In this document: piece by piece, positions 8,401-57,460 of the stretch
How positions within the stretch are numbered: the first letter of the stretch is position 1
Layout: every line of letters starts with the position of its first letter
Source of the DNA: Neoechinorhynchus agilis
Lineage: Eukaryota; Animalia; Acanthocephala
Assembly: GCA_051530055.1 (NCBI GenBank)
Contig: CM121341.1
Coordinates: 11,262,784-11,326,783 of the forward strand
DNA: 64,000 nt
Direction: 5' to 3'
Made by a program: the position numbers and the translations under genes
The notes under the pieces: generated by a model
What the model saw: only the letters and a program-made list of their open reading frames with translations
What the model was told of the DNA's origin: nothing
Databases searched by the model: none

Positions 8401-11360
8401 ACTTCAAACCTTCCTTGGTAGCATGCCAGGGTAAGAGCTGTGTTCCTATTGCTTTCAACATGAGCATTGATATCTGCACCGAGTTCCAACAGAAGTTGAA
8501 CAGCCAGTGCATGACCGTTCATGCTAGCCAACATCAACGGTGTTATTCCAAGCTTAGAGTTGGTTCGAGAGTCTATTTCCGCTTTGTGTTGAGCCAGTAG
8601 GTTTATGATGTCTACGTGTCCACTGGTGGCCGCAAGACACATAGGTGTGTAATCAGAACTATTTCGATGTTCACGGGAAGCTCCTTTAGCGAGCATAAGA
8701 CGAGCAAGGTCAAGGCGACCATGAGAGCAAGCGTAAGACAAGGGAGTGTCGCGAGTTTTATCGCACATACTGTCCACTTGAGCACCACCTTCAAGAAGAA
8801 CTTCAGCCACATGAAGGTTTCCTTCTATGGAAGCCACCATCAGAGGGGTTTGACCTGCTTTGTTACGTTGCTCAACGCCAGCACCGGCGGTCAAAAGAGC
8901 ACACACAATGTCCGGTTGACCGGCTCGTGCTGCCATTATAAGAGCAGTTTCCCCACTGGAACACATAGGAGCGTTGACGTGAGCTGCGAGAGGTCCAGCA
9001 CCTACTTCAGTCACGGGGGGTGTAATTCCAGTAGGCGGTTGAGCTTGCTTCTTTTGCGGAGTTCGTTTAGCAGAGGCTACCTTTTTACGTTGACATCCAC
9101 ATGGGGGTGATCGCAATTTTGGAGAGCGATGATCAGCCAGCCGACGACTACGACCTGTCGCTGATTTATTAGCCGTAGAGTAACTGCGATTGGCCAGTAA
9201 TTGGCATTGGCACGCGGGTGGATGATGCGTTGTAGGTTCTGAGTGGTATGTCATTGGAGGTGATCGTTTGGCCATCTCCCGTACCATCTCGATCCCCTTT
9301 CGAGGGTCAGTATTCACGGCTGTATGAGTGCCTAACTTATCATCAAAAAACCGACTATCTTCTTCGTCATCACTCACATTATAGGTCGAATTATCCGTGG
9401 TGCCTTCGTCGTCCTCATCTTCGTCCTCGTCGTCGTATTCATCTCCGCTGCTCATATCGTCAACAAGTGCGGAATTTGTTGCAGTTGCCACGTTAGCGAC
9501 CGCAGCAGCCATAACAGCAGCAGCATTGCTTGGATCTATTTTACAATTGGATAAGTGATTGACCCATCGATTGGCCAGATGTTCTTGTTCGCACAACAAT
9601 TTCAGATCGGCGATCGGTGCGGATTCCATTAGGCTTCGACGAGTCGTCCATAGATGTGGATCAAGTTCGGCGTTGTGTGCTGACGACAATACACCCCCTT
9701 GATCAAGCATTGTTTTCTTACAAAACTCGAAATACTGTTCAGCCCAAAGTTTGCCTGGACCATGCGGACCACATGATGCACATCCCGGTTCATTTTGAGC
9801 CATTCTATTGATTTGTTCGACCAAATGCATGCCGATGGCTCGGACGCGTTCGTCATTTTCCGCAGAAAGCGCCGGTTGAAAGCATGCGGGAGTCGGCGAA
9901 GGTGGTGTAACAGTCGGAGAGACCGATTGTGTCGATGCAGGACGGTCGTTGGGAAGCTTTGTACCTGAGTCTATCTTCAAATCCGCTTGACCATTTCTGC
10001 GTGCTACTTCACAGATGAGAAGTTTGGCTATCTCTAGATTGCCAGTTTTGCATGCCTCCATAAGGCAGTTTGCACCATCTCGCAACTTGATTTCAGGATC
10101 AGCTCCATTAGCCAACAGAAAGCGCACGACGCTCTGGTTTCCACGTGAAACCGCCAATGAAAGAGCTGAATGGTCTTCACCGGTCGAAAGATTGTCGATT
10201 TTAGCCCCTCGTCTGAGAAGTAGATCGCAAAGATCGACCCGATCTGCGACGACGGCTCTCATAAGTGGGGTAAGTCCACTTTCACAGTCAACGAGTTCAA
10301 TAAGAGCTCCATGGTCTAGGAGATATTGCACTATTTCCATATTTCCACGTTCAGCAGCGATGCCAAGTGGAGTGTCTGGTTTGTCTTGGGACACATTTAC
10401 GGGATGTCCACTTTCGACAAGAAGTTTCACGATATCTGACCGATTATTTTCGATGGCTTCAATCATTGGGTATCGATCTGTAAGGTTGGGATCAGCTCCT
10501 TTGTTTAATAGAAGAGCAATAAGCTCGGGTGGGCCTTGTCTACACGCAAGACTCAGTGCTGTGTGGTTGTGGTTTCTAATGGAGATGCTGTTTACGTCTG
10601 CTTTACAATCGAGCAAGTAGCTGACGATTTGAGTATTATTTAGACAAAGAGTTTTTTGCGGAGAAAAGCGGCACAAACCCTATATCCCCATTGCTAATAA
10701 TCACTAAATGCGCATACACACGCTTTGAATGAGAAACGAGGAGTATTTACAAGAGGGCAAAAATGTTGTTTGAAAACAGTACCACTAACACCGGTGATGC
10801 AAAAAGGTATCGATCACCCTTCACCGGCTCGTCTAACTCTTCATCTACTTCATACCTTGTCTGACCGCCTCCATCAATGGAGTATATCCATCTTCATTAA
10901 GCTCTTCGATATTAGCACCCTCGCTCACTAGCAAATCAACGAGATTCTTGTTTCCTCCGAGAGCTGCTAACATCACTGGAGTGTCTATCCGCTCCATTAT
11001 CTTATCAGGAGATAATCCCTTACGAAGTACGTATTTTGCCAACTCTACGCGGCCATCCATACATGCAGCCAAAAATGCTTTTTCAAGGCATTTTGTTCCT
11101 TCGCCGGTACCATGAACTCCACCGCCAGCACTTTGAAAAGAACGCAGAAAATTCTCAAATTCCTCCAACTGATCTTGAAATACTCGGTTTCCACCAACAA
11201 CAGATGACGACGAAGATCCAACTTGGGATTTCTTCTTTTTGTTGAAACGATGTGGCTGTTGTTGATGGCTGTGATTTGTGGAAAGTTGAGAAGACTGTTG
11301 CTTCTGAGAGGAAGAAGGTTGTGCCTTAACTTTCGAACCTTTATGACCTTTATGATTCAC
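5493..11360 (-). CDS. MASK/ANKHD1/ANKRD17-like multiple ankyrin repeat protein, no KH domain seen; 5' end unresolved
   Basis: ORFs 11360-10845 and 10676-5493 carry two ankyrin clusters (GYTPLMEAVRQG; NSKLGITPLMLASMNGH; RNTALTLACYQGR; SRDTALTIAADRGH) and the MASK-type coiled coil NANELLQMIEGEE...RRREKRKQKRNKKKR. The two ORFs join by removal of 10638-10853. An acceptor tttcag at ~11361 implies a further upstream exon. Confidence 0.85.
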
Positions 11361-11958
11361 TGAAATATAGAAGGGGCATATAGGTTGTTATGTGACCAAA
11401 ACTGACACTTTAATCACAAACGCACATTCGAAAAAGTTACAGATAAATTTTAGCATTCGAATTCCTGAAAACCACACAGTGTGAATGTGCTTGAAAGATT
11501 AGATTTTAAACAAAAAATTTTGAAATCCGATCAAAAAGCACATATACGACCATTTGACTCTAGTGACAGAAAGCAGGAAATCGTTTATTAATTGAAAGTC
11601 TTCAGGTGAAAATTGAAAAACAATATTATGCTAATAAAATATATAACCACTTCTAGATTAATGATCAATTGCCCGGCCAACCTGACTAAAGATAACGAAA
11701 AAGTAGCGCGGCATTCAGAATGTTGATAATTTAGTCGTTATCTGAAAACCGAGGTTATTTAGGTTCCCTCTGGTGGCCAAAAGTGGTGTACTTCACAACT
11801 CATCTTATTTACACGATCGAAAACAAAGCAAAAATCTGATGGATTTAAGATTTGTAGAAATTGTCGGTTCTTATATTTTCTAAATGTCGATTTGTGAGAG
11901 GAGGTACTGGAGAATTATTATTTAGAAGTCTTCATCCAATAAATAATTTTTTATTAAA

Positions 11959-12415
11959 GATGTTTCGAACCTTGAGTTTGTTAATAGATGATGAACACGA
12001 AGAGGTTAAAAACGTCTCTCCCGCTTTATTCAAACTCTCCATTTACAAGCTACTTCAGGTTTCAGAGCTTGTGTCAAAAAACGTATAATCTTGCCAAATA
12101 CTGAGAATTCGGGAAATGCGACCTGGTATACATGCCATCTCGATTCCTGGCCACCTTGGAATAAAGAAAAGACCAACGAATCTAAACTATACAATCTATT
12201 TAAAACTAGAAAAGAACTTACTATCCGGTATAGTCGCGAATCCATTCTTTGGTCACAGTACCTCTGATATCCATTATTTCATTACAAGTAGCAACCCGAC
12301 CCCTGTTGCTCGCAATTGTAGCAATTCTTGGATTCATTTAAGTACCGTGCACACAAACGCGCAGGAATTCCTAGCAGCTAGAAGTGCCTCCCCGGGTGAC
12401 TCTTCTGTGATATAA
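11959..12415 (+). CDS. Possible small hypothetical gene, unresolved
   Basis: MFRTLSLLIDDEHEE...YKLLQ is followed by a donor-like gtttcag and downstream open segments. The frame is not resolved. Confidence 0.2.
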
Positions 12416-12994
12416 AGACATGCTGTAATCCTTTTTGTTGGCTTTCATTGGCATATATACAGTGCACGGTCAACAAAGAAAGAAGATTTTTACACAAAAG
12501 GAGTAATAATGCACCACGAAGAAAATCTAGCTTGATATCTCAGGAAATTGTGCCTTCTGGCTATTTTTGTTTTAAATCGATGTAATATTCAAGTCAATGT
12601 ATGGTTTTTAATCAGAATAAATAAAGAAAAATGATTTGTGGGACTTCTTTAGAATTGCTAAAGTTTTTGTAAAGATGTTCTTCGAGACTGAAGAAGGCCT
12701 GTGCGAAAGCCGAACATTATCAAATAAATCAATTATTTGATAATTCGCTATAAAAAAATGCTAAAGTGCTTAATCCACACTTACTACGTAAAAGGCGAAA
12801 TATTAAATCATTTTTCTTTATCCCTGACCAAAAAACCTTAAAGCGGAAAATGAAGTTTATCCCTCCCTCATTTGCAACGGATGCACAACTAATCATCCTT
12901 TCCAGTGGTAGGAGTCGTTAGCAAACATATTCAAGGGAATTGAATTCTAAAAACGCAAACTTATCGTTCATTCTAACTTCGAACTATTCTGATG

Positions 12995-13510
12995 TTTGTT
13001 TATGGCGTAAAAATTAAAAGAATTTATTGGTTCCAATTGTTTTCGGAGCCACAATTTTATGTTGTTATTTCGGTCGCTTATGAACACCCGAGAGGAGGGA
13101 TCTTATTAAAGACAAATTCATATATTTCGTTGAATCACAGTCATTTTATTAATTCAATTGTTTTATCCGATTCGTCTTTAATGATCCCTTTCGGGTGTCG
13201 ATACCTAAATACCACAATACAATCCTGTGCCCCCATCAAGGTTGTTTGCAAGTGTAATAAAACCTTGATAAAGGCACAAGATTGTATTGTGGTATTTAGG
13301 TCTCGACACCCGAGAGGGATCATTGAATACGAATCGGAAAAAACACTTTAACAATTGATAAAATGACTCTGATTCAACGAAATTTAAAGAATCGTCTTTA
13401 ATAAGATCCATCCTCTCGGGTGTTCATGAGCGACCGAAATAACATCACAACATTGTGGCTCCGAAATATCTCAATTAATAAATTCTTTCAATTTTTACGC
13501 AATAAACAAA
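12995..13510. mobile_element. ~510-bp foldback element with ~245-bp inverted arms
   Basis: The left arm TTTGTTTATGGCGTAAAAATT...GGAGCCACAA...CACCCGAGAGG...CAAGGTT is mirrored by AACCTTG...CCTCTCGGGTG...TTGTGGCTCC...AATTTTTACGCAATAAACAAA. The loop centre is at ~13250. Confidence 0.85.
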
Positions 13511-15449: not shown

Positions 15450-15705
15450 ACTTTCTTTTTGCAGTTTTGCCACCCCATGAGGATTTAAGTTCACTAATTT
15501 ATTTACCCCATATTTCACCTCTCGGATAACTCTGAGATTTTCCCAAGGTTTGTCATTGCTTGCAAGTTTTGAACTTACATATTTCAAAACATACAAGCAA
15601 CGACAAACCTTGATAATGTCGGAATTATCCGATAAGTGAAATATCGGGGAAATAAATTAGTGAACTTAAATCCTCATGGGGTGGCAAAACTAAGAAAAAG
15701 AAAGT
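15450..15705. mobile_element. ~255-bp foldback MITE-like palindrome
   Basis: ACTTTCTTTTT...TTTTGCCACCCCATGAGGATTTAAGTTCACTAATTTATTT is mirrored by AAATAAATTAGTGAACTTAAATCCTCATGGGGTGGCAAAA...AAAAAGAAAGT. Confidence 0.85.
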
Positions 15706-18697: not shown

Positions 18698-19712
18698 ATG
18701 TTGACCTTATTTGACTATCTTGTGTTCGCTCTTTCATGTGAATCCGTTATTGTAGGAGTATTTACGATTTCTTCGAACCAAGAATTGAACAAAATATCTT
18801 TTAATTCTTGGTTGAGGAATAATTGGCGTGCTCTTCGCAAATTAATTGGAATCGGACGCGGTGATCGCGATTTTGAATGTGGAATAAGTGATGTATTGCT
18901 AGAAGCTAACCTAATGAAAAATTCGAGAATCTACAAAGGCATGTCTTCAATATCATTGATTGTTCTGTGGTGTTATCGACAATCACTGGTGTAAATGGCA
19001 TTCGTGGCCTTGGATTGTGAGTATTGTTAATCGGCGTAATAGAAACGGTCCCAGAACTTGTGCAGGAAGCTTGATTGCTCCCAATACCGTTATCACCGCA
19101 GCGCATTGTGTTAGTGAACACACTGATGGATCCAGTACGATTCCAACTAAACCTCAATTTTTAATTGTTATTGCAGGGGCGCATACAATTATTGGAAAGA
19201 TGAATACAATGAATCACTATTCAGTTAGCAAAGTGTATACATATTGGGGATATTCACATTGCTGCTCGCGTGATATTGCTTTAATTAAATTAAGAGAGAA
19301 TCTTTTAAGATCAAAAAAGATCAACACCATTTGCTTGCCTGATTCGAATTTGCGATTTTTGGAAAACAAGAATGCAGTTATAGCGGGCTGGGGTATTAGC
19401 ACCGAAACTCGGAAATGGTACAGTAGCAACAGCGTTACATTGCACCATGGTTATGTACTAATATTGGATGAAAGGACTTGCAGTAACAGTTATTCCTATT
19501 ATGATCCCCATGACGAATTATGCGCTTTAAATCCACTGACTAAAACGGATACGAGACCCGGCGATAGCGGTGGACCGCTTATGATCTTGGAGAATGATAG
19601 GTGGATTCTAGTTGGTGTCGCTAGTCATGGAAATCCGTACAATTCATCCTTTCCCGGGTTTTATTCGAAAATCAACGGCAAATTGGATTTCATTGAGAAG
19701 TACATTAATTAG
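18698..19712 (+). CDS. Trypsin-family (S1A) serine protease zymogen
   Basis: Signal-like N-terminus, ECG...SR|IYKG activation site, HSWPW, TAAHC, DIALIKL and GDSGGP. The two ORFs are in different frames and join by removal of 18950-18992. Confidence 0.9.
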
Positions 19713-20329: not shown

Positions 20330-20985
20330 TTTTTAAACGTCGGTCCTCAGCCACAGAATCTTTCCATCGTTTTCTCAGCCTTCCACGTTCCCTTCGATTT
20401 TCATTTCCTCAACTTTTCGAATAAATCGATTCGGCTCTTCACCTTTCACCATATCGCTCCATTTGATACCCCGTTTCGCGATAACTTCCTTCACGTCCTC
20501 CACTTTGGTTGAGCCCCGGGCAGCATTATTTGGGATAATGTCTTGCCTGGTCACCCCACACATCGATGTGATTCGCATAGGTGTTCCATGTCTCCGCCCC
20601 ATATAACATGGCTGGTTTGATAGCCATCAACACCATGGACACTTTGCTATCACACAAGATCCCAGTTAGGCTTTTCCACTTCATCCATCCGCTATTTATT
20701 CTCGATGAAATCTCATCGGTGATATCGTTTTGCATTGACACTGTAGAGAGCCGCGGTACTTGAATTTGTCGAATTTCTGCAGCTGTCTCGTGAAGGGGAA
20801 TGCTTTCAGTGCCCACGTAGACTGATTTCTCCCTGGAAATTTTTAGATCTCCAGAACTTTCCTCCATTTCTCTAGGTCATTGTTGAGATCCTGGAGTCGG
20901 CGAAAAGCATGTTCCATGGCGCATCTTTATTTCATCCATAATGACCACAAACAAATATGGGCTCAAAGCTGAACTCATACGTTCA
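20330..20985 (-). mobile_element. Decayed RTE-clade non-LTR retrotransposon (RT core and C-terminus)
   Basis: Frameshifted fragments SALSPYLFVVIMDEI, PWNMLFAD, EISSRINSGWMKWKSLTGILCD, KPAMLYGAETW and MCGVTRQD match RTE-type RT motifs. Confidence 0.75.
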
Positions 20986-27198: not shown

Positions 27199-27811
27199 CG
27201 ACGACAGCGATGTCGTTGTTGCCCATAACTTGAATGTGAAAGTATAAGTAACATGTTCATTGTACATTAAGGACTAATTTTTACAGAATGTTGGAAGGGC
27301 ATGCGCTGTTTAGTGAAAGAATCTTTTATATAATTAGTCTACGCTTTGAAAATCTGTTTGAGAAGCAATCAGAAAATCAGTATCCTTTGGCAATATTCCA
27401 AATTTCAGACTGAGTATTTAATTATGCAAAGATTTCCGGCTTATGTTGGAGTCTCTCACTCCAGCAGCTACAAGTTAATGCACAACAAACTTAAACATTG
27501 AATATCCCCTAGCTTAATTTTTTAGTTGAATCCAATGTAATTTGCTCATATCGTTTAAGGTCCACTTTAAGATCCGATGCGTTGAATAAGCCAATAGCAT
27601 CGCTGGGTAGCTAGATCTAACTTGGATAGCGAAATCACACTCAAGTTGGTCACATAAAACGGCTACACCCGACAACTATGACCTTCAAAATTTAAATGCA
27701 GTCATCGTCCGACTTCGGTGGTACTCTTTTTAACTGTCCGCTTTATCACAAAGTGAGTATCTCTGAAGAATAGAAGATAGCGGGATTGGAGTTGACAGAT
27801 ATCGCAGGTGT

Positions 27812-35680: not shown

Positions 35681-35783
35681 ATTTTTGCTTTATTTTTCAC
35701 AGTTATCCAATTGTGCCAGTACGCTCCTTAGAGAGATCAATTTGACTTCACAGGCAGGACCAAACATAGAGAAAAATTAGAAT

Positions 35784-39044: not shown

Positions 39045-42000
39045 GTCCACTAGCAACGTTGAGAAGGCGATGGGAGCAAGGTTGATACTCTCTCACCTAA
39101 AACGCTACTCTAATCCTCGCTATGGGCACTCAAAGTGAAGACAGTCCTGAAAAAGTGCTTGGATTTCGAAATTGCCCAACGACGATGATTCCGATGGTGA
39201 AAAGTAAGACCGGAGTGACGGATGACTGACCGTATACAAATCCTCAGAAATTGCAGATTCGAATTGTAATGCCGACCATCATAACCTCGAACAAGCGAGT
39301 TAAAATCAAGTCTATCTCCTGGAACAAAACGGGATGCAATCAGTTGGAAATCAACTTCCTGTGATGCAATGGATTAAGACTTAGCTTGATGAAGCAAAGC
39401 TTCGCGGACTCTACTCTAAACGGCTTTAACGAAAGGCTCCAAGATCTTCAATTTGGACGCTTAAACGTCCACTGGCAACGCTGCGAAGGCGATGGGAGCA
39501 ATACTGATACTCTCTCACCTAAAACGCTACTCCAATCCTCGCTATGGACACTCAAAGTGAAGACAGTCCTGAAAAAAGTGCTCGGATTTCGAAATTGCCC
39601 AACGACGATGATTCCAATGGTAAAAAGTAAGACCGGAGTGACGGATGACTGACCGTATACAAATCCTCAGAAATTGCAGATTCGAATTGTAATGCCGACC
39701 ATCATAACCTCGAACAAGCGAGTTAAAATCAAGTCTCTCTCCTGGAACAAAACGGGATGCAATCAGTTGGAAATCAACTTCCTGTGATGCAATGGATTAA
39801 GACTTAGCTTGATGAAGCAAAGCTTCGCGGACTCTACTCTAAACGGCTTTAACGAAAGGCTCCAAGATCTTCAATTTGGACGCTTAAACGTCCACTGGCA
39901 ACGCTGCGAAGGCGATGGGAGCAATACTGATACTCTCTCACCTAAAACGCTACTCCAATCCTCGCTATGGACACTCAAAGTGAAGACAGTCCTGAAAAAA
40001 GTGCTCGGATTTCGAAATTGCCCAACGACGATGATTCCAATGGTAAAAAGTAAGACCGAAGTGACGGATGACTGACCGTATACAAATCCTCAGAAATTGC
40101 AGATTCGAATTGTAATGCCGACCTTCATAACCTCGAACAAGCGAGTTAAAATCAAGTCTCTCTCCTGGAACAAAACGGGATGCAATCAGTTGGAAATCAA
40201 CTTCCTGTGATGCAATGGATTAAGACTTAGCTTGATGAAGCAAAGCTTCGCGGACTCTACTCTAAACGGCTTTAACGAAAGGCTCCAAGATCTTCAATTT
40301 GGACGCTTAAACGTCCACTGGCAACGCTGCGAAGGCGATGGGAGCAATACTGATACTCTCTCACCTAAAACGCTACTCCAATCCTCGCTATGGACACTCA
40401 AAGTGAAGACAGTCCTGAAAAAAGTGCTCGGATTTCGAAATTGCCCAACGACGATGATTCCAATGGTAAAAAGTAAGACCGAAGTGACGGATGACTGACC
40501 GTATACAAATCCTCAGAAATTGCAGGTTAGAATTCTCATGCCGACCTTCATAACCTCGAACAAGCGAGTTAAAATCAAGTCTCTCTCCTGGAACAAAACG
40601 GGATGCAATCAGTTGGAAATCAACTTCCTGTGATGCAATGGATTAAGACTTAGCTTGATGAAGCAAAGCTTCGCGGACTCTACTCTAAACGGCTTTAACG
40701 AAAGGCTCCAAGATCTTCAATTTGGACGCTTAAACGTCCACTGGCAACGCTGCGAAGGCGATGGGAGCAATACTGATACTCTCTCACCTAAAACGCTACT
40801 CCAATCCTCGCTATGGACACTCAAAGTGAAGACAGTCCTGAAAAAAGTGCTCGGATTTCGAAATTGCCCAACGACGATGATTCCAATGGTAAAAAGTAAG
40901 ACCGAAGTGACGGATGACTGACCGTATACAAATCCTCAGAAATTGCAGATTAGAATTCTAATGCCGACCTTCATAACCTCGAACAAGCGAGTTAAAATCA
41001 AGTCTCTCTCCTGGAACAAAACGGGATGCAATCAGTTGGAAATCAACTTCCTGTGATGCAATGGATTAAGACTTAGCTTGATGAACAAAGCTTCGCGATC
41101 TACTCTAAACGGCTTTAACGAAAGGCTCCAAGATCTTCAATTTGGACGCTTAAACGTCCACTGGCAACGCTGCGAAGGCGATGGGAGCAATACTGATACT
41201 CTCTCACCTAAAACGCTACTCCAATCCTCGCTATGGACACTCAAAGTGAAGACAGTCCTGAAAAAAGTGCTCGGATTTCGAAATTGCCCAACGACGATGA
41301 TTCCAATGGTAAAAAGTAAGACCGAAGTGACGGATGACTGACCGTATACAAATCCTCAGAAATTGCAGATTCGAATTGTAATGCCGACCATCATAAACTC
41401 GAACAAGCGAGTTAAAATCAAGTCTCTCTCCTGGAACAAAACGGGATGCAATCAGTTGGAAATCAACTTCCTGTGATGCAATGGATTAAGACTTAGCTTG
41501 ATGAAGCAAAGCTTCGCGGACTCTACTCTAAACGGCTTTAACGAAAGGCTCCAAGATCTTCAATTTGGACGCTTAAACGTCCACTGGCAACGCTGCGAAG
41601 GCGATGGGAGCAATACTGATACTCTCTCACCTAAAACGCTACTCCAATCCTCGCTATGGACACTCAAAGTGAAGACAGTCCTGAAAAAAGTGCTCGGATT
41701 TCGAAATTGCCCAACGACGATGATTCCAATGGTAAAAAGTAAGACCGAAGTGACGGATGACTGACCGTATACAAATCCTCAGAAATTGCAGATTAGAATT
41801 CTCATGCCGACCTTCATAACCTCGAACAAGCGAGTTAAAATCAAGTCTCTCTCCTGGAACAAAACGGGATGCAATCAGTTGGAAATCAACTTCCTGTGAT
41901 GCAATGGATTAAGACTTAGCTTGATGAAGCAAAGCTTCGCGGACTCTACTCTAAACGGCTTTAACGAAAGGCTCCAAGATCTTCAATTTGGACGCTTAAA

Positions 42001-43012
42001 CGTCCACTGGCAACGCTGCGAAGGCGATGGGAGCAATACTGATACTCTCTCACCTAAAACGCTACTCCAATCCTCGCTATGGACACTCAAAGTGAAGACA
42101 GTCCTGAAAAAAGTGCTCGGATTTCGAAATTGCCCAACGACGATGATTCCAATGGTAAAAAGTAAGACCGAAGTGACGGATGACTGACCGTATACAAATC
42201 CTCAGAAATTGCAGATTAGAATTCTAATGCCGACCATCATAAACTCGAACAAGCGAGTTAAAATCAAGTCTCTCTCCTGGAACAAAACGGGATGCAATCA
42301 GTTGGAAATCAACTTCCTGTGATGCAATGGATTAAGACTTAGCTTGATGAAGCAAAGCTTCGCGGACTCTACTCTAAACGGCTTTAACGAAAGGCTCCAA
42401 GATCTTCAATTTGGACGCTTAAACGTCCACTGGCAACGCTGCGAAGGCGATGGGAGCAAGACTGATACTCTCTCACCTAAAACGCTACTCCAATCCTCGC
42501 TATGGACACTCAAAGTGAAGACAGTCCTGAAAAAAGTGCTCGGATTTCGAAATTGCCCAACGACGATGATTCCAATGGTCAAAAGTAAGACCGAAGTGAC
42601 GGATGACTGACCGTATACAAATCCTCAGAAATTGCAGATTCGAATTGTAATGCCGACCATCATAAACTCGAACAAGCGAGTTAAAATCAAGTCTCTCTCC
42701 CGGAACAAAACGGGACGCAATCAGTTGGAAATCATCTTCCTATGATGCAATGGATTAAGACTTAGCTTGATGAAGCAAAGCTTCGCGGACTCTACTCTAA
42801 ACGGCTTTAACGAAAGGCTCCAAGATCTTCAATTTGGACGCTTAAACGTCCACTGGCAACGCTGCGAAGGCGATGGGAGCAAGACTGATACTCTCTCACC
42901 TAAAACACTACTCCAATCCTCGCTATGGACACTCAAAGTGAAGACAGTCCTGAAAAAAGTGCTCGGATTTCGAAATTGCCCAACGAGGATGATTCCAATG
43001 GTAAAAAGTAAG
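39045..43012 (+). repeat. Tandem array of a 423-bp unit, ~9.4 near-identical copies
   Basis: Identical 88-aa ORFs start at 39386, 39809, 40232, 40655, 41078, 41498, 41921, 42344 and 42767. Spacing is 423 bp, and 420 bp once. Confidence 0.97.
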
Positions 43013-43533
43013 ATCGAAATTTCTGTGTATCTTTGTCGTTTAAAAATAGTTACAATTCTTCATGTCTGTTACTAAAATCGTTCAGACGGTACTGTGTATG
43101 CGCATGAACATTTCTTATTGTCTAAATGTGACTCATTCTCTCAGTTTTTGTTCATTGACTGGTTTTTTTGCAGTAAATGCAGAATCTGCACCATCATTTT
43201 CCAATGCGTAACAATGAAGAACTACAGTTCTCCCACTTTTTACATTCTAATTTCACTAGGAAATTTTGGTTGTGCTATGAAGATATCCTCGAACGAGCTT
43301 TGGCGTAACGCGGTGCCAGTTAAATCGATTTAAGCGTTTACACGCATTCTTTAAGAATCAAAAGGATTGTTGCCTTTAATCCATAAATTTAAATTTAGCT
43401 TCCTCTTCCCTGATAGCAACATTCTAGATTTCCTCTAAAAGCTTAAATCATTATATTAACCCGCTATTTAAAAACGAATCTACCAAATAATAAATTTTAG
43501 CTTCTTTTTTAAAGCGAAGACTGCAATTTTCAG

Positions 43534-44081
43534 ATGAAGGCTAGCCTTGCTGTGAGGGAAGCGAGTGGCTTCGTTATATTCCGTCGTCCGTCCTGCCGGC
43601 GACCAGTCGAATATCTTCTTTTGAAAGCATCCTATAAGCCTTATCATTGGACGCCTCCAAAAGGTATAAAATTATCCATCATGACTCCATGCAGAATGCC
43701 CATTAACATGTTTTAGGCCACATTGATCCGGGTGAGACAGCTTACTTGGCTGCGATTAGAGAAACCAAAGAAGAAGCCGGAATCAGGGCCAGCGATATGA
43801 AACAGGATCCTAAATGGGAACCACTTCCAATCACAATCGAGTATACAACACCTACGAATGTGCTAAAGAAGGTGCATTACTACATCAGCGAGGTTGGCAA
43901 TCAAACGAAGGTCATCTTAAGCTCAGAGCATAGATAAAGAGGAGTAGCTGGGCGATTTCTTGGTAGATTCTTCTCTTATTGTACAGAGTATACTTGGCAG
44001 CCCTTAAGTGTTGCAATGGATATAGTGAATTTTCCAGAAATGCAGAAGGTGCTTGAGATTGTTAATGAGCGAGTGTGTTGA
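43534..44081 (+). CDS. NUDT2: Bis(5'-nucleosyl)-tetraphosphatase (asymmetrical Ap4A hydrolase), Nudix family
   Basis: ASGFVIFRR...EYLLLKASY..HWTPPK|GHIDPGETAYLAAIRETKEEAGI (Nudix box) and LSSEH|TEYTW...FPEMQKVL. Exons 43534-43663, 43717-43931 and 43983-44081; the second interruption is non-canonical. Confidence 0.92.
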
Positions 44082-45192: not shown

Positions 45193-46963
45193 CTACACGC
45201 TATCTTCCCCTTTAACAACGTCCAGACTAATTGGGGAATCTACTAATTCGTCGTCGTTTTCACTCTTTTCATGCCCGTGTCTAATCCAAGGTTCAACATC
45301 GCCACTTCCAAGAATGAGAAAGAGCAATCCGCCGATGACCCAAATAACCGACGATATGATAAAGACTGTTCTCCATTGCCAAGCAACATCAAGTCCCTAA
45401 AATATATTACATAAAACGTTACAATCTTGATGCACTTACATTTCCTTCCTTTGTGAGAAATCCGGCGACGTGTGGCACAATTATGCCCGGAATCGTGGCC
45501 AGGGTGTTCGAAATCCCGAAAACTATTCCGGCAATTGGAGGTGCTAGGTCATTCGCATTCACCATGAACCCCGCTCCCCATGCAACACCACTAAATTAAA
45601 ATTTTAAATGAAATATTTAAGAAACCAAAGAGTCTTACTATAAGCCTTGACCGATTGTCAACAAAGCGACAGCTAAGAATTTGTTTTGGCAGTTCACAAA
45701 TCCGAGAGCAAAGAGACATATTGCGGGTATTATGGAACCTTTGATTTAATGTAGTGACAAAGAATTCGCTAGAACCTCAAACCTATCAAAACTGCCACTT
45801 TGCGTAGAAGGGTCCTGCTCTTGACCAGGTTTTTACTTAGCAATAGATCGGCCGAATAACTTGATACACAGATAACGATCCATACCGACAGATAGGGTAA
45901 GGATGATAAAAGTCCGTTCTAAAATATCTTTTCGGGTTTTATTCTTAAAAAAATCAACAAACCTTCTTTATATCAAAAAGTAGTTCTTCTTTCATGTAGG
46001 TCGGCGTTTGGGTTAGTAGAGTATAAAATCCCCAGTTCATGCAGGTATGACAAGAGAACATCCCCCAGCAGTGTTTGCTGGTGAAAATTGATTTCCATGG
46101 AACATTGGAATGGTCGTCTCCTCCAGCTCCTCCAGTAAATCTCGCAATGTAAAGCTTTTCCGCATTCCCAGTGAATTTGTTTTTTTCGGGAGTGTCTGAG
46201 AAAATGATTATCCATGCGAAGGTCCATACAAAGCCCAATATGGCAATGGTATAGAAAAGTCCGGGCCATCCCCACTTAGTCGTACACAAAAATCCTCCCA
46301 GAGGAAGAGTCATTATGGTGCCCAAATGAGCTCCGGATGTAGCTAAACTCACCAAGAAACTCCTTTCAGGTGTAGGAGCCCATTTGCTCCATATCTGAGA
46401 TACAGCCGGAAATAGACAGCCGCACCCGGTTCCAACTACCACCCTCAGGAAGATGAGTAGACCGTAGTGAATCCTGGCAGCTGAAGCGTAAAGAAGATTA
46501 CAAAGACAGTTGGTGAGTAGAGCGCCTGTCATAACCCATTTTGGGCCGTATTTAGAGGAAAGGATTCCGGCTGGGATTTCGCTGATTAAGTATCCATAAG
46601 GTTGAAATCGTCCATGCGATAAAGTGCTCTTCGCCCCATAGACGACTCCAACGCGTAAAAGAAAGCACTAAGTAGATGGGACCGTATTGTAGGTGACCAA
46701 TCAAATGTCTCCCTTTTGAATAGATCTTTCTTGGCGGTCTTTGTTTTACTGGAAGTGCCTAGTTCAGGACATAGTTGCATTGAGCGATTCGCTCGTTCGG
46801 TCATTTTTGTAACTTTACTCTTGGTATCTACCATACAAACCAAATTGACACTTAAATCTATTTTCTGGCAGTACTGCATGAACATTCCCAACATGGCCAG
46901 AATTGCTACTACTTGCCGCATATGACCGGCCTTTCTAGCCAACGGTTCCTCAGGGTTAGTCAT
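45193..46963 (-). CDS. SLC17 (sialin/VGLUT/NaPi-like) MFS anion transporter
   Basis: FDWS...LSAFFY|GYLISEIPAG, RVVVG...FPAVSQIWSKWAPTPERS, GWPGLFY, WGFYTLLTQTPTYM, GFMVNANDLAP..AG and WRTVF. It has four GT-AG introns (43-50 nt) plus a 59-nt non-canonical insert at 46598-46656. Confidence 0.92.
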
Positions 46964-49306: not shown

Positions 49307-50011
49307 TCATCTAAAGTCTTCGTGTGTTTCACAATCCGGAAACTGTTTCTTCATCCATCGCACAATTGCAATGATCGTTTCTTCGTCCTCGGCACTAACG
49401 TATATGTATCCATTGAACCCAACAATTATCTCGTATTTTATTTCTTTAGCAAGCAAGAACAGCGATCTGGCATCTTGTTTAATGAGTGAGAGTGCACTCA
49501 TGGGCGACATTCTAATGAGAATTCCGTGTTCATGTAAAGGTCCCATACCATTGGCGGTTCCATCTCGCTCAACACAAGTCAACTCCGCCGGTCCGCTCTC
49601 GGCACTCTTACGAACCCGACAAAATACGAGGTCTCCAGGTGAAAGCTCCGGTTTGTTCCGATGAGTGGCTCGTTCGAATGAAAGTCGAGGCAAAAGGGCA
49701 TACTCGCAAGCGTTAATGCTCACTTTGTAGACCTCGGATGAGCGATTGGCGATTACTCCAACGACGTAGTCGCGAGGCACTGGAGTGTACAGCTTTGGTA
49801 AAGTATTCAAATGCACTCCGTTCACATGTCCGTTTTTATTGTACTCGAAAATCACTCGACCACATATTAACGATTTAAATGTATCCGTGGACAAACGTCG
49901 CAGGCCGTTACCAACGAGCGGAAATTCTATTGATTTTAGCTTTGGAGAAATTTTGAACTCGCATCCATGGAGAACAATTTCACCGTTTTCGACATTCAAA
50001 ATATCCGACAT
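49307..50011 (-). CDS. EXOSC3: Exosome complex component RRP40
   Basis: GNGLRR, YTPVPRDYVVGVI, ALLPRLSFERATHRNKPELSPGDLVFCRV, ELTC...GMGPL and EIIVGFNGYIYV match the RRP40 S1/KH pattern. Intronless. Confidence 0.92.
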   Translation of the reverse strand: MSDILNVENGEIVLHGCEFKISPKLKSIEFPLVGNGLRRLSTDTFKSLICGRVIFEYNKNGHVNGVHLNTLPKLYTPVPRDYVVGVIANRSSEVYKVSINACEYALLPRLSFERATHRNKPELSPGDLVFCRVRKSAESGPAELTCVERDGTANGMGPLHEHGILIRMSPMSALSLIKQDARSLFLLAKEIKYEIIVGFNGYIYVSAEDEETIIAIVRWMKKQFPDCETHEDFR

Positions 50012-51634: not shown

Positions 51635-54349
51635 CTACTTCATTGTACTTGGATCTTCTCGTCGTCGCTTATTTTGAAGATGTGAATGCTTATTTCGGAT
51701 TTCCTTTCGTTTTCTTTTTTTTGAAGGTTCACACTCAGGCGCCTTCTCATTAGAACTTTTGTCACCTTCTGTCCTTGAAATCGATTGCTCATTCTCACCT
51801 CCATCACTTTTGGAACGTTTCGGACTATTTGCGGTTTCTCGAGTTTCTGGAGAAGAATCAATCACTTCAATCACTTCTGGTGGGGTTTTATCATCGATGA
51901 CAATAAATTCCCGCCTATCATATGACCCTTGAATGATGGGCATGGAGCATTTTATATCGAACGTAAGCTGCGGAGTAGGAGATACCGCTGGTGCCAAATT
52001 CATGGATTTCCGAATGACGCTTCCAATTTTGTTTAATGCTTCTTTGAACATGTCCTTACAATTAACGTTCTTTTCGTTCAGATTCATCTCTCTAAAAACT
52101 GGTAGGAGACCAGAGGATAAAATGTCGAAACATGTGAAGTCCTGAGCTGTTATTTCACTTAAGACGAGTCGTACCCAATCTTCATTCGTAACGGCATGCG
52201 TATAATCCAATCCAAACGAAAGTTTGAAACACAACTCTTGGAGCATTTCTAGTATCGTTGTATTTTCTGGTTCCGTTTTTTGTTCACTTTTCTTTGTCGG
52301 AATGCTCTCGGTGTCATCTTCAGGGCATGATCGCTTTTTACCTTTCACGCTGTCGTCTTCTTTAGGCTTCATCTCAGTTAACGATTCGCTGTTGGCTTCA
52401 TTTGATATTGTTGGGCGTTTGGCCTCGGTCGCTTCATGAATTGAATCAATCTTCCTCTTCAGACTCGTCTCATGCATTTCCTTCCCTCGTGGTGCCAGAT
52501 TTTCACCGGTTGGCAGATTTTTTTCTGGTTCCGTTTTTTGCTCACTTTTCTTTGTCGGAATGCTCTCGGTGTCATCTTCAGGGCATGATCGCTTTTTACC
52601 TTTCACGCTGTCGTCTTCTTTAGGCTTCATCTCAGTTAACGATTCGCTGTTGGCTTCATTTGATATTGTTGGGCGTTTGGCCTCGGTCGCTTCATGAATT
52701 GAATCAATCTTCCTCTTCAGACTCGTCTCATGCATTTCCTTCCCTCGTGGTGCCAGATTTTCACCGGTTGGCAGATTTTTTTCTGGTTCCGTTTTTTGCT
52801 CACTTTTCTTTGTCAGAATGCGGACGGTGTCATCTTCAGGGCATAATCGCTTTTTACCTTTCACGCTGTCGTCTTCTTTAGGCTTCATCTCAGTTAACGA
52901 TTTGCTGTTGGCTTCATTTGATATTGTTGGGCGTTTGGCCTCGGTCGCTTCATGAATTGAATCAATGTTCCTCTTCAGACTCGTCTCATGCATTTCCTTC
53001 CCTTGTGGTGCCAGATTTTCACCGGTTGGCGGATTTTTTTCTGGTTCCAATTTTTGTTCACTTTTCTTTGTCGGAATGCGGTCGGTGTCATCTTCAGGGC
53101 ATAATCGCTTTCTACCTTTCACGCTGTCGTCTTCTTTAGGCTTCATCTCAGTTAACGATTCGCTGTTGGCTTCATTTGATATTGTTGGGCGTTTGGCCTC
53201 GGTCGCTTCTTGAATTGAATAAATCTTCCTCTTCAGACGCGTCTCATGCATTTCCTTCCCTCGTGGTGCCAGATTTTCACCGGTTGGCAGATTTTTTTCT
53301 GGCTCCGTTTTTTGTTCACTTTTCTTTGTCGGAATGCTCTCGGTGTCATCTTCAGGGCATGATCGCTTTCTACCTTTCACGCTGTCGTCTTCTTTAGGCT
53401 TCATCTCAGTTAACGATTCGCTGTTGGCTTCATTTGATATTGTTGGGCGTTTGGCCTCGGTCGATTCTTGAATTGAATAAATCTTCCTCTTCAGACTCGT
53501 CTCATGCATTTCCTTCCCTTGTGGTGCCAGATTTTCACCGGTTGGCGGATTTTTTTCTGGCTCCGTTTTTTGTTCACTTTTCTTTGTCGGAATGCTCTCG
53601 GTGTCATCTTCAGGGCATGATCGCTTTCTACCTTTCACGCTGTCGTCTTCTTTAGGCTTCATCTCAGTTAACGATTCGCTGTTGGCTTCATTTGATATTG
53701 TTGGGCGTTTGGCCTCGGTCGATTCTTGAATTGAATAAATCTTCCTCTTCAGACGCGTCTCATGCATTTCCTTCCCTCGTGGTGCCGGATTTTCATCGGT
53801 TGGCAGATTTTTTTCTGGCTCCGTTTTTTGTTCACTTTTCTTTGTCGGAATGCTCTCGGTGTCATCTTCAGGGCATGATCGCTTTTTACCTTTCACGCTG
53901 TCGTCTTCTTTAGGCTTCATCTCAGTTAACGATTCGCTGTTGGCTTCATTTGATATTGTTGGGCGTTTGGCCTCGGTCGCTTCATGAATTGAATCAATCT
54001 TCCTCTTCGGACTCGTCTCATACATTTCCTTCCCTTGTGGTGCCAGATTTTCACCGGTTGGCAGATTTTTTTCTGGTTCCGTTTTTTGTTCACTTTTCTT
54101 TGTCAGAATGCGGACGGTGTCATCTTCAGGGCATGATCGCTTTTTACCTTTCACGCTGTCGTCTTCTTTAGGCTTCATCTCAGTTAACGATTCGCTGTTG
54201 GCTTCATTTGATATTGTTGGGCTTTTGGCCTCGGTCGCTTCATGAATTGAATCAATCTTCCTTTTCAGACTCGTCTCATGCATTTCCTTCCCGTCCGGTG
54301 CCGGATTTCCATCGGTTGGCAGATTTTTGATTTGCTGATTGCTAGTCAT
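51635..54349 (-). CDS. Charged repeat protein with eight 86-aa tandem units and a short globular C-terminal region
   Basis: Uninterrupted ORF with the first ATG at 54349 (MTSNQQ). The 258-bp unit is repeated 8 times without a frameshift and is rich in KRK/KKR motifs. Confidence 0.8.
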   Translation of the reverse strand: MTSNQQIKNLPTDGNPAPDGKEMHETSLKRKIDSIHEATEAKSPTISNEANSESLTEMKPKEDDSVKGKKRSCPEDDTVRILTKKSEQKTEPEKNLPTGENLAPQGKEMYETSPKRKIDSIHEATEAKRPTISNEANSESLTEMKPKEDDSVKGKKRSCPEDDTESIPTKKSEQKTEPEKNLPTDENPAPRGKEMHETRLKRKIYSIQESTEAKRPTISNEANSESLTEMKPKEDDSVKGRKRSCPEDDTESIPTKKSEQKTEPEKNPPTGENLAPQGKEMHETSLKRKIYSIQESTEAKRPTISNEANSESLTEMKPKEDDSVKGRKRSCPEDDTESIPTKKSEQKTEPEKNLPTGENLAPRGKEMHETRLKRKIYSIQEATEAKRPTISNEANSESLTEMKPKEDDSVKGRKRLCPEDDTDRIPTKKSEQKLEPEKNPPTGENLAPQGKEMHETSLKRNIDSIHEATEAKRPTISNEANSKSLTEMKPKEDDSVKGKKRLCPEDDTVRILTKKSEQKTEPEKNLPTGENLAPRGKEMHETSLKRKIDSIHEATEAKRPTISNEANSESLTEMKPKEDDSVKGKKRSCPEDDTESIPTKKSEQKTEPEKNLPTGENLAPRGKEMHETSLKRKIDSIHEATEAKRPTISNEANSESLTEMKPKEDDSVKGKKRSCPEDDTESIPTKKSEQKTEPENTTILEMLQELCFKLSFGLDYTHAVTNEDWVRLVLSEITAQDFTCFDILSSGLLPVFREMNLNEKNVNCKDMFKEALNKIGSVIRKSMNLAPAVSPTPQLTFDIKCSMPIIQGSYDRREFIVIDDKTPPEVIEVIDSSPETRETANSPKRSKSDGGENEQSISRTEGDKSSNEKAPECEPSKKRKRKEIRNKHSHLQNKRRREDPSTMK
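52255..54325 (-). repeat. 258-bp coding tandem repeat x8
   Basis: ISNEANS(E/K)SLTEMKPKEDDSVKG occurs 8 times. The recurring antisense 73-aa ORFs are spaced 258 bp apart. Confidence 0.95.
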
Positions 54350-56242
54350 AATCTCTTTGGTGATGGTTGAACGCAAGCGCGTGTTGTACTAGAGGTTATC
54401 TACTCGCTTAGCGAGATTGCTCTTGAACAACCGCAAATCAACCAACAATTACTTGTTTGCGAGCGTCGTTCAATATTTTTGTGTTTATTGTTGTCCAATT
54501 AAGCAGCAAACACCTATGAGCCAATCAATGAATAATGAAAAACATACGTCGAAACGTACCGGCATTTAGGATAATCACTTGTTCAAACGTCATATAACTT
54601 TGAAATACTCTTGTACTCGATTGAACATACCGTTTGAATATATAATTTAACGAAAAGGCAATGATAAGAGTTACTCAACTACTTCTAGTAGCGTTAACAA
54701 ATCTAAGATAAAATCGCCGACTGTGATCGCTATCGGCAAAATTTCTATTCTGACTTCTCATAACAATCACACGAGAAAAATATATGAATGATGGACTTAT
54801 TCGGGTTTTGATAGTGAGAAAAATCTTGATTAACTGTCTAAAATGCCTATAAAGCAACTATTTAATGTAACAATCAGACGCAACTGACCGAAAAATCAAT
54901 ATTAGAACTTCTGTCAATTACTGAAGCTCGAATGCGTTTAGTCAAAGCTATCAGGCCCGAATGAGAGTGAAAAAGCAACTTGTCTATTGCAGTTTTAGGA
55001 TCCATTGAAGTCGCGAAAAGGGCGGAAGATCGAAAAAAGGAGAAGTACAAATGCCTCCCTGAGTTGTCAAACAAGGCTAAAAAGTGGCACAGCGACGACG
55101 GACTCCCGTGAAACCAACTACTTTTATTAGAGAATCATCTGTGCGATTAAGAAAGGGAAATTTTTGAGGATAAAAGTGTCACTACGTTCCCATTAATTTA
55201 TATCAGAAAACATATAAATTCCATTGGTATTTAATCTGCAGTCAGCACAAATTCTTTGAAAAATTAGATGGCACAAAATGATATATTTTTAGCTTCCATT
55301 CAGATAGTAGCTATTTACTGGATGAAATCATTATTCCATAAACTTAATCTTTTAATTCCTAATGATAAACTTGGCAGAATTTTAAACTCAATATTCCGTT
55401 AAAAAATGCCGTCATATTTATTGCGAAAGAGAGAATTAGTCGTTTTTGTGCTTTGAACCGATTTGGAAAAAAGAACTATTGAGATCGAAAAAGCGAAAAC
55501 TTGTTTGTTCTTAGCGGATTTGGAAAATTCTTCTCTTTTGATTTCTAAACATTTCAAAAACCCACACTGTGTGCGAAGTTGATAAACGATCCAGTTTGAA
55601 AGTGCAGAATCGTGTCAAGATCGACTTTTAAGTATAGCGAACATGCTGATGCATTAGAATTTTGCCTGTTGTATTGAATTTTTTTCGTTACTGGAAGTGA
55701 AAACGGATGTAAAATGCGCCATATTTTCCAAACTGTTTAAATTTTTTTGAATGTTCACGGCGTAGATTTGAGCGTGGTCAAAAGGGTGTCGCCTCCAATA
55801 CGACGTGAAGTTAAGTCATTTCGGACGATTTACAGCTTCTTTTCTTACTGAAATGTATCGGTTTTTAGTGATAGATAAATTTAAATTCCTACTAAGACCA
55901 GATTGTCAAAAATCACTAAGCAAACAGAACTTCGGTATCTCATGTGAATCGCTGGATTACTTTATACCGTTTAGCGATAACTGCTAGTTTTACTACTAGC
56001 AAAAAAGGTTGCGGGTATTTGTGGTTCTGACCTGGTTAGGAATCTACACTGGCGTTCAATAGAATTTCTGGCCAAAAACTTTAGAAACAACTGAAACCTT
56101 TATTAATTTCAAAGAAGGATAAGTTCACAGAAGCAGTGTCTTTGATGAACTTATATCACGTTTCCTTTTCCAACACAGCGCCACATACGTGATAAAACGA
56201 GCATATATGACCAAGCAAATTTCGTTTTCGACTTTTTCATAA

Positions 56243-56639
56243 ATGCCATATCCGAGTTTTAGTAGCAAAATGAGCAATGATAGTTCCTACCAGGGTACAG
56301 GAAGTCATTCATTTCGGCAAAAGACCCCGATGGCTCTAATAATTGAAATGGACGACTACCGCCGGTCTCAACGGCTGAATCGAACTCATCGTGTAAGACA
56401 CAACGGAACAACAGCTATGCGATTACAGAAAACAACACGATTCTAGAACACTTAAAGAATCGCGTTCCATAAAAACAGGACGGGCGATCAGATCCATGAA
56501 ATACATAACAAAAACGACGAGTGCAACGGATGTGATGGTTTTTATCACGTCTCTCATCTCGCTCGTGATACTTGTGCTCACCATCTTCACACTTATTAAA
56601 GCAATCCAAATCAAAATAATGTTAAATTCAAAGAATTAA
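56243..56639 (+). CDS. Possible small tail-anchored membrane protein
   Basis: An ATG ORF (56243) and an overlapping second frame ending in VMVFITSLISLVILVLTIFTLIKAI...KN*. They can be joined only through a very short 22-nt gtaaga...aacag intron. Confidence 0.25.
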
Positions 56640-57460
56640 AGGTTCTTCTTTTTGGAGAGTTTCCTTGATCGTTGAGACAGCATGTGACCGTACATTGTTG
56701 GGAAGACTATTTTTTTAAAGTAGGTGAAATTGAGACATATATCAGTCGAAAGTAATACTAACGTAAGGCGTATATCCCAAACACCAACGGAAGGATGAAC
56801 GATGCGTCCAGTGAAATATTAAGGGAATTCGGGAGTTGATAGGATACGGAACGACACCATTGCTCTCCTTCTTTTGTCTTTAATACCAAGTAAAAAGATC
56901 GACCTATAACATTGAGTTCTGATAAGACACCGACGGGATAAAGAACCACGAATAAAGAGTATCTGAATGAGCAAGATTGATTTTTTTACCATTTACTAAT
57001 CGCAGACTCACCTTAGCCACTCGAGGAATCCAGGACATCGCTTAATCAATGTCATCGTGTAAAACAAATATCGACAAAGATCTGCCATCGTCCAGGTCAA
57101 CACTATTCCGCAGATTCCATAGCATTTCACAACCCATGTACAATGCATTATTTACGCCATTGGCACATTAGTAAAATCAATACCTCTTTTTCAATCAATG
57201 AATGGTTTAAACCACCCAAGAGACCACATGCAATAAAGTTTCGAGACAAAAGTTGAATTCCGGTTATTAAAGGTCTCGACGACGTAAATCGGAACACTGC
57301 ATGAGCGACCTTAGATGCAAGTGAGACAATTTTTAAGATCAATATATTTCTGTGTAATTAAGGAACTGACAAACCTCGACTAAGGCTACAAGCTGTGCCA
57401 TTTTGACCATTGAGCCAATTTCATCGTACATCCGGACATAGATTGGCTTGTAGTTTAATG
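56636..57460 (-). CDS. Very-long-chain 3-hydroxyacyl-CoA dehydratase (HACD/PTPLA family); 5' end unresolved
   Basis: YDEIGSMVKMAQLVALVE|VAHAVF...QLLSRNFI...LTWTMADLCRYLFY...EWLR|YSLFVVLYPVGVLSE...|FPTMYGHMLSQR. It has three GT-AG introns plus a non-AG interruption at ~57105-57172. Confidence 0.88.

Follow-up and report, generated by a model that had tools for sequence, protein, structure and literature searches.

Short TA-bounded interruptions of conserved genes in the acanthocephalan Neoechinorhynchus agilis: candidate nonconventional introns in an animal

How can six conserved genes be expressed if each of them is interrupted, within an otherwise open frame, by a short piece of DNA causing a frameshift or carrying an in-frame stop codon? 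This question is raised by a stretch of the genome of Neoechinorhynchus agilis (Acanthocephala), i.e., positions 11,262,784-11,326,783 of CM121341.1 in the assembly GCA_051530055.1; the whole stretch analysed, 64 kb in length, is referred to hereafter as the window. The analysis points to an abundant unconventional intron class in an animal, unreported before: judging from the sequence, the pieces are probably (with a probability of about 0.7) nonconventional introns that would be removed from the N. agilis pre-mRNA. The preliminary description of this DNA had listed six interruptions, whose boundary strings were each found once and at the place given for them. The six pieces are the following (lengths in nucleotides, nt; a bar marks a junction).

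18950-18992, plus strand: piece in a trypsin-like protease gene, 43 nt, A|A..T|A; the whole piece is one hairpin
36155-36203, minus strand: piece in the glycyl-tRNA synthetase (GlyRS) gene, 49 nt, T|A..T|A; phase-0 position QR(T/V)|Y
43932-43982, plus strand: piece in the NUDT2 (Ap4A hydrolase) gene, 51 nt, T|A..T|A; with an in-frame stop
46598-46656, minus strand: piece in the SLC17 (sialin-like transporter) gene, 59 nt, TT|A..TT|A; a 22-pair hairpin
57105-57172, minus strand: piece in the HACD (3-hydroxyacyl-CoA dehydratase) gene, 68 nt, T|A..T|A
10638-10853, minus strand: piece in an ankyrin-repeat gene (ANKHD1/ANKRD17 type), 216 nt, T|A..T|A; the ends are connected through an approximately 13-bp stem

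The N. agilis DNA covered here amounts to about 86 kb, that is, the window plus 22 kb from another chromosome. The genome is 46 Mb in size; its assembly, a hybrid of Oxford Nanopore Technologies (ONT) and Illumina reads, was obtained from whole-worm DNA (adults and pools) and annotated by BRAKER with RNA-seq hints. The word "intron" is absent from the paper describing it.

The SLC17 piece is the best-supported member of the set. Contig 17081 of the Logan run SRR6291294 (1761 nt) encodes an uninterrupted 504-residue SLC17 orthologue, whose protein is 68% identical, and is evidently the mRNA of a relative. This mRNA reads through SAFFYGY as SHLLSAFFYGYL, its bases there being TTCTTTTATGG; the N. 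agilis SLC17 exons deprived of the 59 nt give TTCTTTTATGG, base-identical to the mRNA of the relative, and the removal of exactly 59 nt scores best. Moreover, the alignment of the spliced product with sialin (8dwi) covers the full length, the junction being ungapped. The same run probably carries transcripts of the other five genes too.

In the case of GlyRS, the exact removal of 49 nt ranks first among 1012 in-frame options when scored with a profile hidden Markov model built on 112 homologues; the registers from -4 to +1 lie mutually within 1.4 bits, and those sharing the TA repeat are at most 0.5 bit from the top. Removal of the NUDT2 piece gives the junction LSSEH|TEYTW, ungapped against both 1kt9 and 3u53, while the trypsin-like protease regains R|IYKGMSSKWHSWPW, ungapped against plasmin RVVGGCVAHPHSWPW (1qrz). 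Without its 216 nt, the ankyrin-repeat gene, whose flank shows Ank Pfam matches, reads GYTPLMEAVRQG|NTQIVSYLL, and the repeat period of 33 residues is regained. As regards HACD, the removal of 68 nt gives a 29-residue SR..W spacing, as in C. elegans HPO-8, and the junction is ungapped against the solved structure 22of. The same spacing is presumably found in human HACD2. The search for HACD homologues returned the species' own model alone. The membership of HACD in the class is doubtful.

It had been argued that removal must occur, and the data agree with this argument: removal is deduced from the fact that the genes are conserved, look functional, and have frames intact in all other respects, and that a single GlyRS is annotated. 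The GlyRS assembled from the window is 97% identical over its whole length to the public N. agilis protein ACOME3_002639, which is the sole GlyRS among the public proteins of the species, i.e., one copy in the protein collection; the protein clusters of the public GlyRS and SLC17 models (P0001 and P0121) have one member each.

The analysis of the junctions revealed that the notation N|A...T|A, proposed in the preliminary description, fits all six pieces, with T|A at 11 of the 12 junctions; the trypsin-like gene is the sole site lacking T|A on the 5' side, and the first exon base after the piece is A in every case. A duplicated TA had been reported at five sites. Counting TA within four bases of the homology-defined junction, TA..TA is found within ±4 registers at five sites out of six vs. 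3.9% of random placements within the window (binomial P = 5e-7). Five of the pieces (HACD being the exception) also have a closing stem no more than 8 nt from both ends, the corresponding fraction in length-matched random segments being 0.11-0.28.

The pieces had been described as forming stems, several with G:U pairs. The terminal stem (5/6) and the many G:U pairs are indeed there, but the folding energy is individually significant for SLC17 alone: the z values against dinucleotide shuffles are -1.9 for trypsin (-10.7 kcal/mol), -1.5 for GlyRS, -1.2 for NUDT2, -5.2 for SLC17, and -0.6 for HACD. In all six pieces the sense strand folds more stably than the antisense one, by 2.7-19.8 kcal/mol, and the sense folds contain 35 G:U pairs vs. 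one A.C mismatch, with up to 37% of the stem pairs being G:U. As an example, the NUDT2 stem has 19 pairs, 7 of which are G:U, and its antisense fold reaches merely -2.0 kcal/mol. G exceeds C in each of the six pieces, the adjacent exons showing little skew. Folding with the flanks included puts both junctions into the same internal loop, located at the base of one long helix.

The folding of 40,930 TA..TA segments of 30-100 nt from the window placed SLC17 alone, of the six pieces, at a high rank, so that hairpin energy by itself misses the class; the other top-folding segments are either long non-coding palindromes or in-frame GC-rich stretches of the ankyrin exon. In a brute-force scan, any deletion of 25-300 nt fusing two open frames, 40 codons or longer, was sought; one strand by itself produced some 1.5 million solutions and 174 loci, and the scan was dropped, since it is too noisy without a coding-potential model. 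No Rfam family (mirtron, microRNA, small nucleolar RNA, etc.) matched the window at the gathering score.

The same genes also harbor introns of the ordinary kind, and the contrast drawn in the preliminary description between these and the odd pieces is borne out. The canonical introns are nine in number, GT-AG, 43-369 nt long, with 19-35% GC and T-rich 3' ends; they begin with GTAAGT, GTTTGT or similar and are barely folded (-0.03 to -0.15 kcal/mol per nt). They are arranged as follows.

36652-37020, minus strand: GlyRS canonical intron, GTAAGT..TTTTAAG; position common to Pomphorhynchus laevis
43664-43716, plus strand: NUDT2 canonical intron, GTATAA..TTTTAG
45919-45962, 45739-45782, 45591-45638, and 45397-45439, minus strand: four canonical introns of SLC17, 43-48 nt (span 45397-45962)
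57310-57374, 56963-57011, and 56707-56762, minus strand: three canonical introns of HACD (span 56707-57374)

The six pieces depart from U2-type introns, being structured, with 37-51% GC and without T-rich 3' ends. Hence, two distinct kinds of interruption clearly coexist in the same genes. In most genes of N. agilis the ordinary introns measure 43-65 nt, and of the nine or more intron positions present in P. laevis GlyRS, the N. agilis gene (35784-38046, minus strand) retains two; introns so few and short fit with massive intron loss and shrinkage in a 46-Mb genome.

As to the origin of the pieces, GlyRS and SLC17 give different answers. The GlyRS of P. laevis has a canonical GT-AG intron of 4.2 kb at the codon boundary QRT|Y, and that of the monogonont rotifer Brachionus plicatilis has a 55-nt GTAAAT..AAAAAG intron at the same boundary; the ambiguity of the boundaries in N. 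agilis lets its piece occupy the same phase-0 position. Both intron positions remaining in the N. agilis gene are common to P. laevis, the chance of an independent coincidence being about 2%, and the best interpretation of the piece is that of an old spliceosomal intron with changed ends. On the other hand, the SLC17 position is intronless in Adineta ricciae, in the P. laevis paralogue, and in the N. agilis paralogue, and the mRNA of the relative has the site empty and reads TTTTATGG, where a TA is found at this very point, so that the SLC17 piece looks like a gain at a TA. It follows that the term "inserts", adopted in the preliminary description, suits SLC17, which resembles a gain, but not GlyRS, which occupies an old intron position.

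MITEs (miniature transposable elements with inverted repeats) of the Tc1/mariner type, invoked earlier as a precedent, match the pieces in some respects and not in others. TA..TA at five of the six sites and imperfect inverted repeats agree with them, but no multi-copy family is seen: the pieces have zero other copies in the window, in locus L001, or around the SLC17 paralogue (locus L005), for a total of about 86 kb. In addition, a piece at the position of an old intron, as in GlyRS, is not predicted by MITE insertion. The origin of the class is probably mixed, with old introns converted and gains occurring at TA through palindrome-forming insertions.

Long, near-perfect, and unique palindromes also exist in the non-coding DNA of the window (13203-13297, 5115-5205, and 15528-15626), with stems of 37-40 bp and few G:U pairs; one long palindrome is located just 3' of the ankyrin gene, on the ankyrin sense strand, and another lies at about 10640-10870 of locus L005, inside a canonical intron of the SLC17 paralogue. 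These non-coding palindromes may be akin to the exonic hairpins but younger, or may have arisen through a palindrome-making process. The neighbours of the SLC17 paralogue in L005 gave no clear further case of an odd piece.

If the pieces are introns, how might they be removed? In the scheme proposed here, an intramolecular helix, often rich in G:U pairs, would place the two junctions next to each other; on either side, cleavage would occur at the U|A step or at most one base away from it, and the exons would be joined, one UA staying. Three observations point to the RNA rather than to the DNA as the level of removal: the pairing is strand-specific, the GlyRS piece continues an old intron, and the assembly, made from whole-worm DNA, contains all six pieces. 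The earlier preference for the RNA level receives indirect support from the sense-fold bias and from the ancestral intron position of the GlyRS piece. Concerning the enzyme, we lean (about 60:40) towards a U2-type spliceosome with relaxed end recognition over an endonuclease acting with a ligase, since GlyRS would continue an old spliceosomal intron and the A...U ends resemble the AG/AT class of Fritillaria.

The comparison with known systems had been summarized by stating that the precedents differ in detail. This is correct in that their specific rules fail, but close analogues do exist: the pieces work like the systems of euglenids, Amoebophrya, and Fritillaria, and fit the sequence rules of none of them. 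With the nonconventional introns of Euglena gracilis and E. agilis they share the absence of GT-AG and of a polypyrimidine tract, pyrimidine|purine junctions, terminal pairing, short direct repeats allowing the junctions to slide, and the coexistence with conventional introns. The purine expected as the first exon base is likewise found, being an A at all six sites, whereas the rest of the euglenid code, N3-CAG...CTG-N5-6|R, is absent, positions +4 to +6 being TCA, GAA, TAA, CGT, AAT, and AAG; moreover, the repeat is here specifically TA and the host is an animal. Euglenid nonconventional introns leave as full-length circles, after the conventional ones; in Euglena, removal, circular products, and the code (by mutation) have been shown by experiment, while removal in N. 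agilis is read from sequence.

The larvacean Fritillaria borealis is an animal with many non-GT-AG introns, which carry a TA-containing repeat (YAY/TAC) at both junctions, have A...T terminal bases in their AG/AT class, and have been suggested to derive from inverted-repeat elements; all these features are shared with N. agilis. About 95% of the Fritillaria introns are non-canonical, starting with AG and ending with YAY, the conserved positions keeping GT-AG, and their dependence on the U2 spliceosome, together with a U2AF duplication, has been shown. N. agilis differs in that canonical introns are the majority and one odd member lies at a conserved position. The AG...YAY rule also fails, since NUDT2 alone starts with AG and no piece ends in YAY: the last three bases are TGT, CGT, TGT, CTT, AAT, and AAT for trypsin, GlyRS, NUDT2, SLC17, HACD, and ankyrin, respectively, or GTA, GTA, GTA, TTA, ATA, and ATA if shifted by one. 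The introners of Amoebophrya (Syndiniales), in turn, share inverted repeats (there of 8-20 nt) that fold into a hairpin connecting the borders of the exons, direct repeats overlapping the junctions, and variable terminal dinucleotides. They differ in having variable repeats of 3-5 nt, partly repeated families, and a protist host; the N. agilis pieces have inverted repeats too, with a direct repeat of 2 nt (3 at SLC17).

The strongest competitor to the relaxed spliceosome lies within the same reading of the pieces as introns: a spliceosome-free removal from RNA, in which a structure-guided endonuclease would cut after U at both U|A steps, at the base of the helix, and a tRNA-type, RtcB-like ligase would join the exons and might circularise the intron, a route suspected in euglenids. 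This is a tentative possibility that we do not prefer, suggested by the near-complete pairing of some members, the symmetry of the U|A junctions, and the lack of signals for a branch site or of a pyrimidine type. The trypsin and SLC17 pieces are almost wholly paired, which leaves little room for a branch site, and the published account of the euglenid introns (junctions of the pyrimidine|purine type, paired ends, absence of a polypyrimidine tract, short direct repeats) fits the pieces. Against it, the euglenid CAG/CTG motif (+4 to +6 and -8 to -6) is absent, the GlyRS member goes back to the position of a spliceosomal intron, and the sole animal precedent, Fritillaria, uses the U2 spliceosome. 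The folds also differ from the substrates of tRNA-type and IRE1-type splicing, being a single long helix with U|A rather than G|C junctions and with neither bulge-helix-bulge nor IRE1-type loop geometry. Cuts of the tRNA type occur at two 3-nt bulges 4 bp apart, those of the IRE1 type in the CNG|CNGN loops of twin hairpins. We know of no such mRNA-wide endonuclease-ligase pathway in animals, which also counts against this route.

Some observations weigh against considering the pieces as nonconventional introns at all. Excision and its exact register are here inferred rather than observed, and the sample consists of six sites in 64 kb. Except for SLC17, the hairpin energies are modest, and HACD has no terminal stem. 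The excess of G:U comes from minimum-energy folds, which favour G:U, and may partly be explained by strand-biased mutation, given that the non-coding palindromes lean the same way (4:1). Eight canonical introns and zero odd ones were counted in the SLC17 paralogue, which lies at another place of the genome. Lastly, alternatives of the GT-AG or AT-AC type exist at HACD and, less so, at NUDT2 and trypsin: in HACD, an in-frame 53-nt GTAAAT..AATAG intron, chosen by the public model P0241, would add five residues, and in NUDT2 an AT..AC register of equal length, two bases to the right, would change one non-conserved residue.

These last options are the core of a different explanation, i.e., that the genes undergo ordinary splicing at cryptic GT-AG, GC-AG or AT-AC sites, in line with the assumption of the public annotation, and yield proteins with local deletions or insertions. 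The in-frame choices at HACD, NUDT2, and trypsin (AT..AC), together with the RNA-seq hints available to BRAKER, speak for it, yet we regard it as unlikely. All in-frame GT-AG, GC-AG, and AT-AC pairs around each site were enumerated, and the earlier statement that no GT-AG or GC-AG pair works was found to hold for trypsin, GlyRS, NUDT2, SLC17, and ankyrin, where conserved residues are lost or replaced, but not for HACD. All such GT/GC-AG pairs in trypsin remove the WPW region. In GlyRS, the nearest in-frame option costs 14 residues (GC-AG), or 15 for the nearest GT-AG, and overall 14-18 conserved residues of the catalytic core would be lost; in SLC17, every option contradicts both the orthologue mRNA and the sialin alignment; in ankyrin, the nearest GT-AG option costs four residues and breaks the repeat. 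Moreover, the pieces lack the AT-richness and the T-rich 3' ends of the nearby GT-AG introns.

Two more uniform rules of this type were rejected. The U12-type AT-AC class (5' /ATATCCTT, with a TCCTTAAC branch site near the AC end) does not account for the set: trypsin alone starts with ATATCA, with no match to the branch site; the GlyRS, NUDT2, SLC17, HACD, and ankyrin pieces start with AAAGAA, AGATAA, ACGCGT, ACTAAT, and ATGAAG, and no workable AT-AC register was found at GlyRS, SLC17, HACD, or ankyrin. A common GT donor is possible at GlyRS (GTTTAA, giving QRPYF) and ankyrin only, neither of which has AG, and the ankyrin donor G|GTATGA would put D in place of a conserved G.

A further explanation places the event in the DNA, as for the internal eliminated sequences (IESs) of Paramecium: programmed excision at TA would leave one TA, and the assembly would represent the germline form. 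The likeness is real, since both Paramecium IESs and Stowaway-like Tc1/mariner MITEs are short elements with TA at both ends, one TA left, and imperfect terminal inverted repeats; TA..TA with one TA kept, a hallmark of IESs and of Tc1/mariner duplications, fits five of the six sites, and 43-216 bp is within the IES size range. However, IESs and MITEs are events of the DNA level with end consensus sequences and multi-copy families, whereas the pieces show no consensus and, in about 86 kb, no family: their ends fail TAYAGYNR, the bases following TA being AAGAAG, GATAAA, CGCGTT, CTAATG, and TGAAGT. The strand-specific folding with many G:U pairs would be meaningless for DNA, and the GlyRS piece takes the place, at an identical codon boundary, of a spliceosomal intron; this pairing and this shared position point to RNA. 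All six pieces were assembled, although entire adult worms and pools served as the source of the DNA. To our knowledge, DNA elimination has not been reported in Acanthocephala, and IES-like excision appears quite improbable.

Hardly any better placed is the view that the genes are simply broken, the pieces being recent or polymorphic insertions, signs of pseudogenes, or assembly errors that are never removed. Palindromic elements do exist in the non-coding DNA of N. agilis, and the assembly is an ONT and Illumina hybrid. This view, which we likewise consider improbable, would nevertheless imply that, out of the approximately ten conserved genes present in 64 kb, five or six are dead, including the only annotated GlyRS, while their frames are otherwise intact and align end to end with homologues; the stems appear old, with up to 37% G:U and pairing kept, and the pieces are unique rather than copies of their flanks. 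Finally, translational bypassing, in which ribosomes hop over the piece as in gene 60 of phage T4 or, in Magnusiomyces mitochondria, at the byp elements, would agree with short structured pieces and with the early in-frame stops of GlyRS and NUDT2, but is practically negligible, given lengths of up to 216 nt, no matching take-off and landing codons, several pieces without a nearby stop, the nuclear location of the genes, and, as far as we know, no precedent in animal nuclear genes.

Removal of the pieces as nonconventional introns of the pre-mRNA is, then, the reading retained here. The literature on Acanthocephala yielded no report of non-canonical introns, and the class is likely to be new for the phylum and the second among animals after Fritillaria. 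The lineages known to be rich in non-GT-AG introns are very few, Fritillaria being the only one among animals; if the reading is true, N. agilis would be a second independent animal case, in which both kinds can be compared intron by intron in the same genes, and an old intron changing kind, as in GlyRS, bears on the evolution of splice-site recognition and on intron gain. It is also conceivable, though on the whole rather doubtful, that the pieces belong to an animal splicing route operating at thousands of sites and reading an RNA helix and U|A instead of GT-AG, by cutting and ligating independently of the spliceosome in a euglenid-like manner or, less likely, to IES-like DNA excision. If true, the helix and U|A route would take over ancestral introns (GlyRS) and tame new insertions (SLC17). 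The question is directly testable on 74 public RNA-seq libraries.

The pieces also affect the public annotation. The BRAKER model of GlyRS (P0001, 35784-38835, minus strand) misses 18 conserved residues, YCIWEHNIRVRPDDVQRV, having DHP instead, and carries about 100 unsupported N-terminal residues; in that of SLC17 (P0121, 45193-46963, minus strand), a 16-residue stretch replaces the four conserved residues SAFF, with a net gain of 12. The errors of these two models are attributed to BRAKER forcing GT-AG pairs. The public NUDT2 model (43534-44081, plus strand) has only 116 amino acids, and that of HACD (P0241, 56636-57605, minus strand) has five additional ones. Works based on the proteome inherit such errors, for instance, the inference of gene losses in parasitic rotifers and drug-target screens for aquaculture pests. 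The BUSCO scores of the genome are lower than those of the transcriptome (metazoan set, 47% vs. 55%; eukaryotic set, 58% vs. 71%), a difference to be expected if such introns defeat the gene finders; the low score of the genome may partly be an artefact of them.

The remaining part of the window contains other features. The EXOSC3/RRP40 gene (49310-50011, minus strand), with S1 and KH domains (Pfam E = 9e-26), is intronless and represents a conserved gene with neither type of interruption. In the LRR-Ig gene (25279-28615, plus strand), a gap of about 600 nt (27196-27811) separates two long open frames. Fragments of frames similar to reverse transcriptases, with motifs of non-long-terminal-repeat retroelements such as LSPLLFNIFLNGL, are found at 20378-20876 and 34941-35696 (minus strand in both cases) and appear to be decayed copies. 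Positions 39045-43018, between GlyRS and NUDT2, are occupied by a tandem array with 9.4 copies, 98% identical, of a unit measuring 423 bp, each unit having open frames of 72-95 codons on both strands. An open frame of 917 codons (51638-54388, minus strand) consists mostly of eight tandem repeats of 258 bp (86 residues), 96% identical, at 52263-54328. Lastly, an 81-bp tandem repeat with 75-81% identity extends for about 4 kb (58674-62666); the stretch holding it is AT-rich, with a strong skew of A over T.

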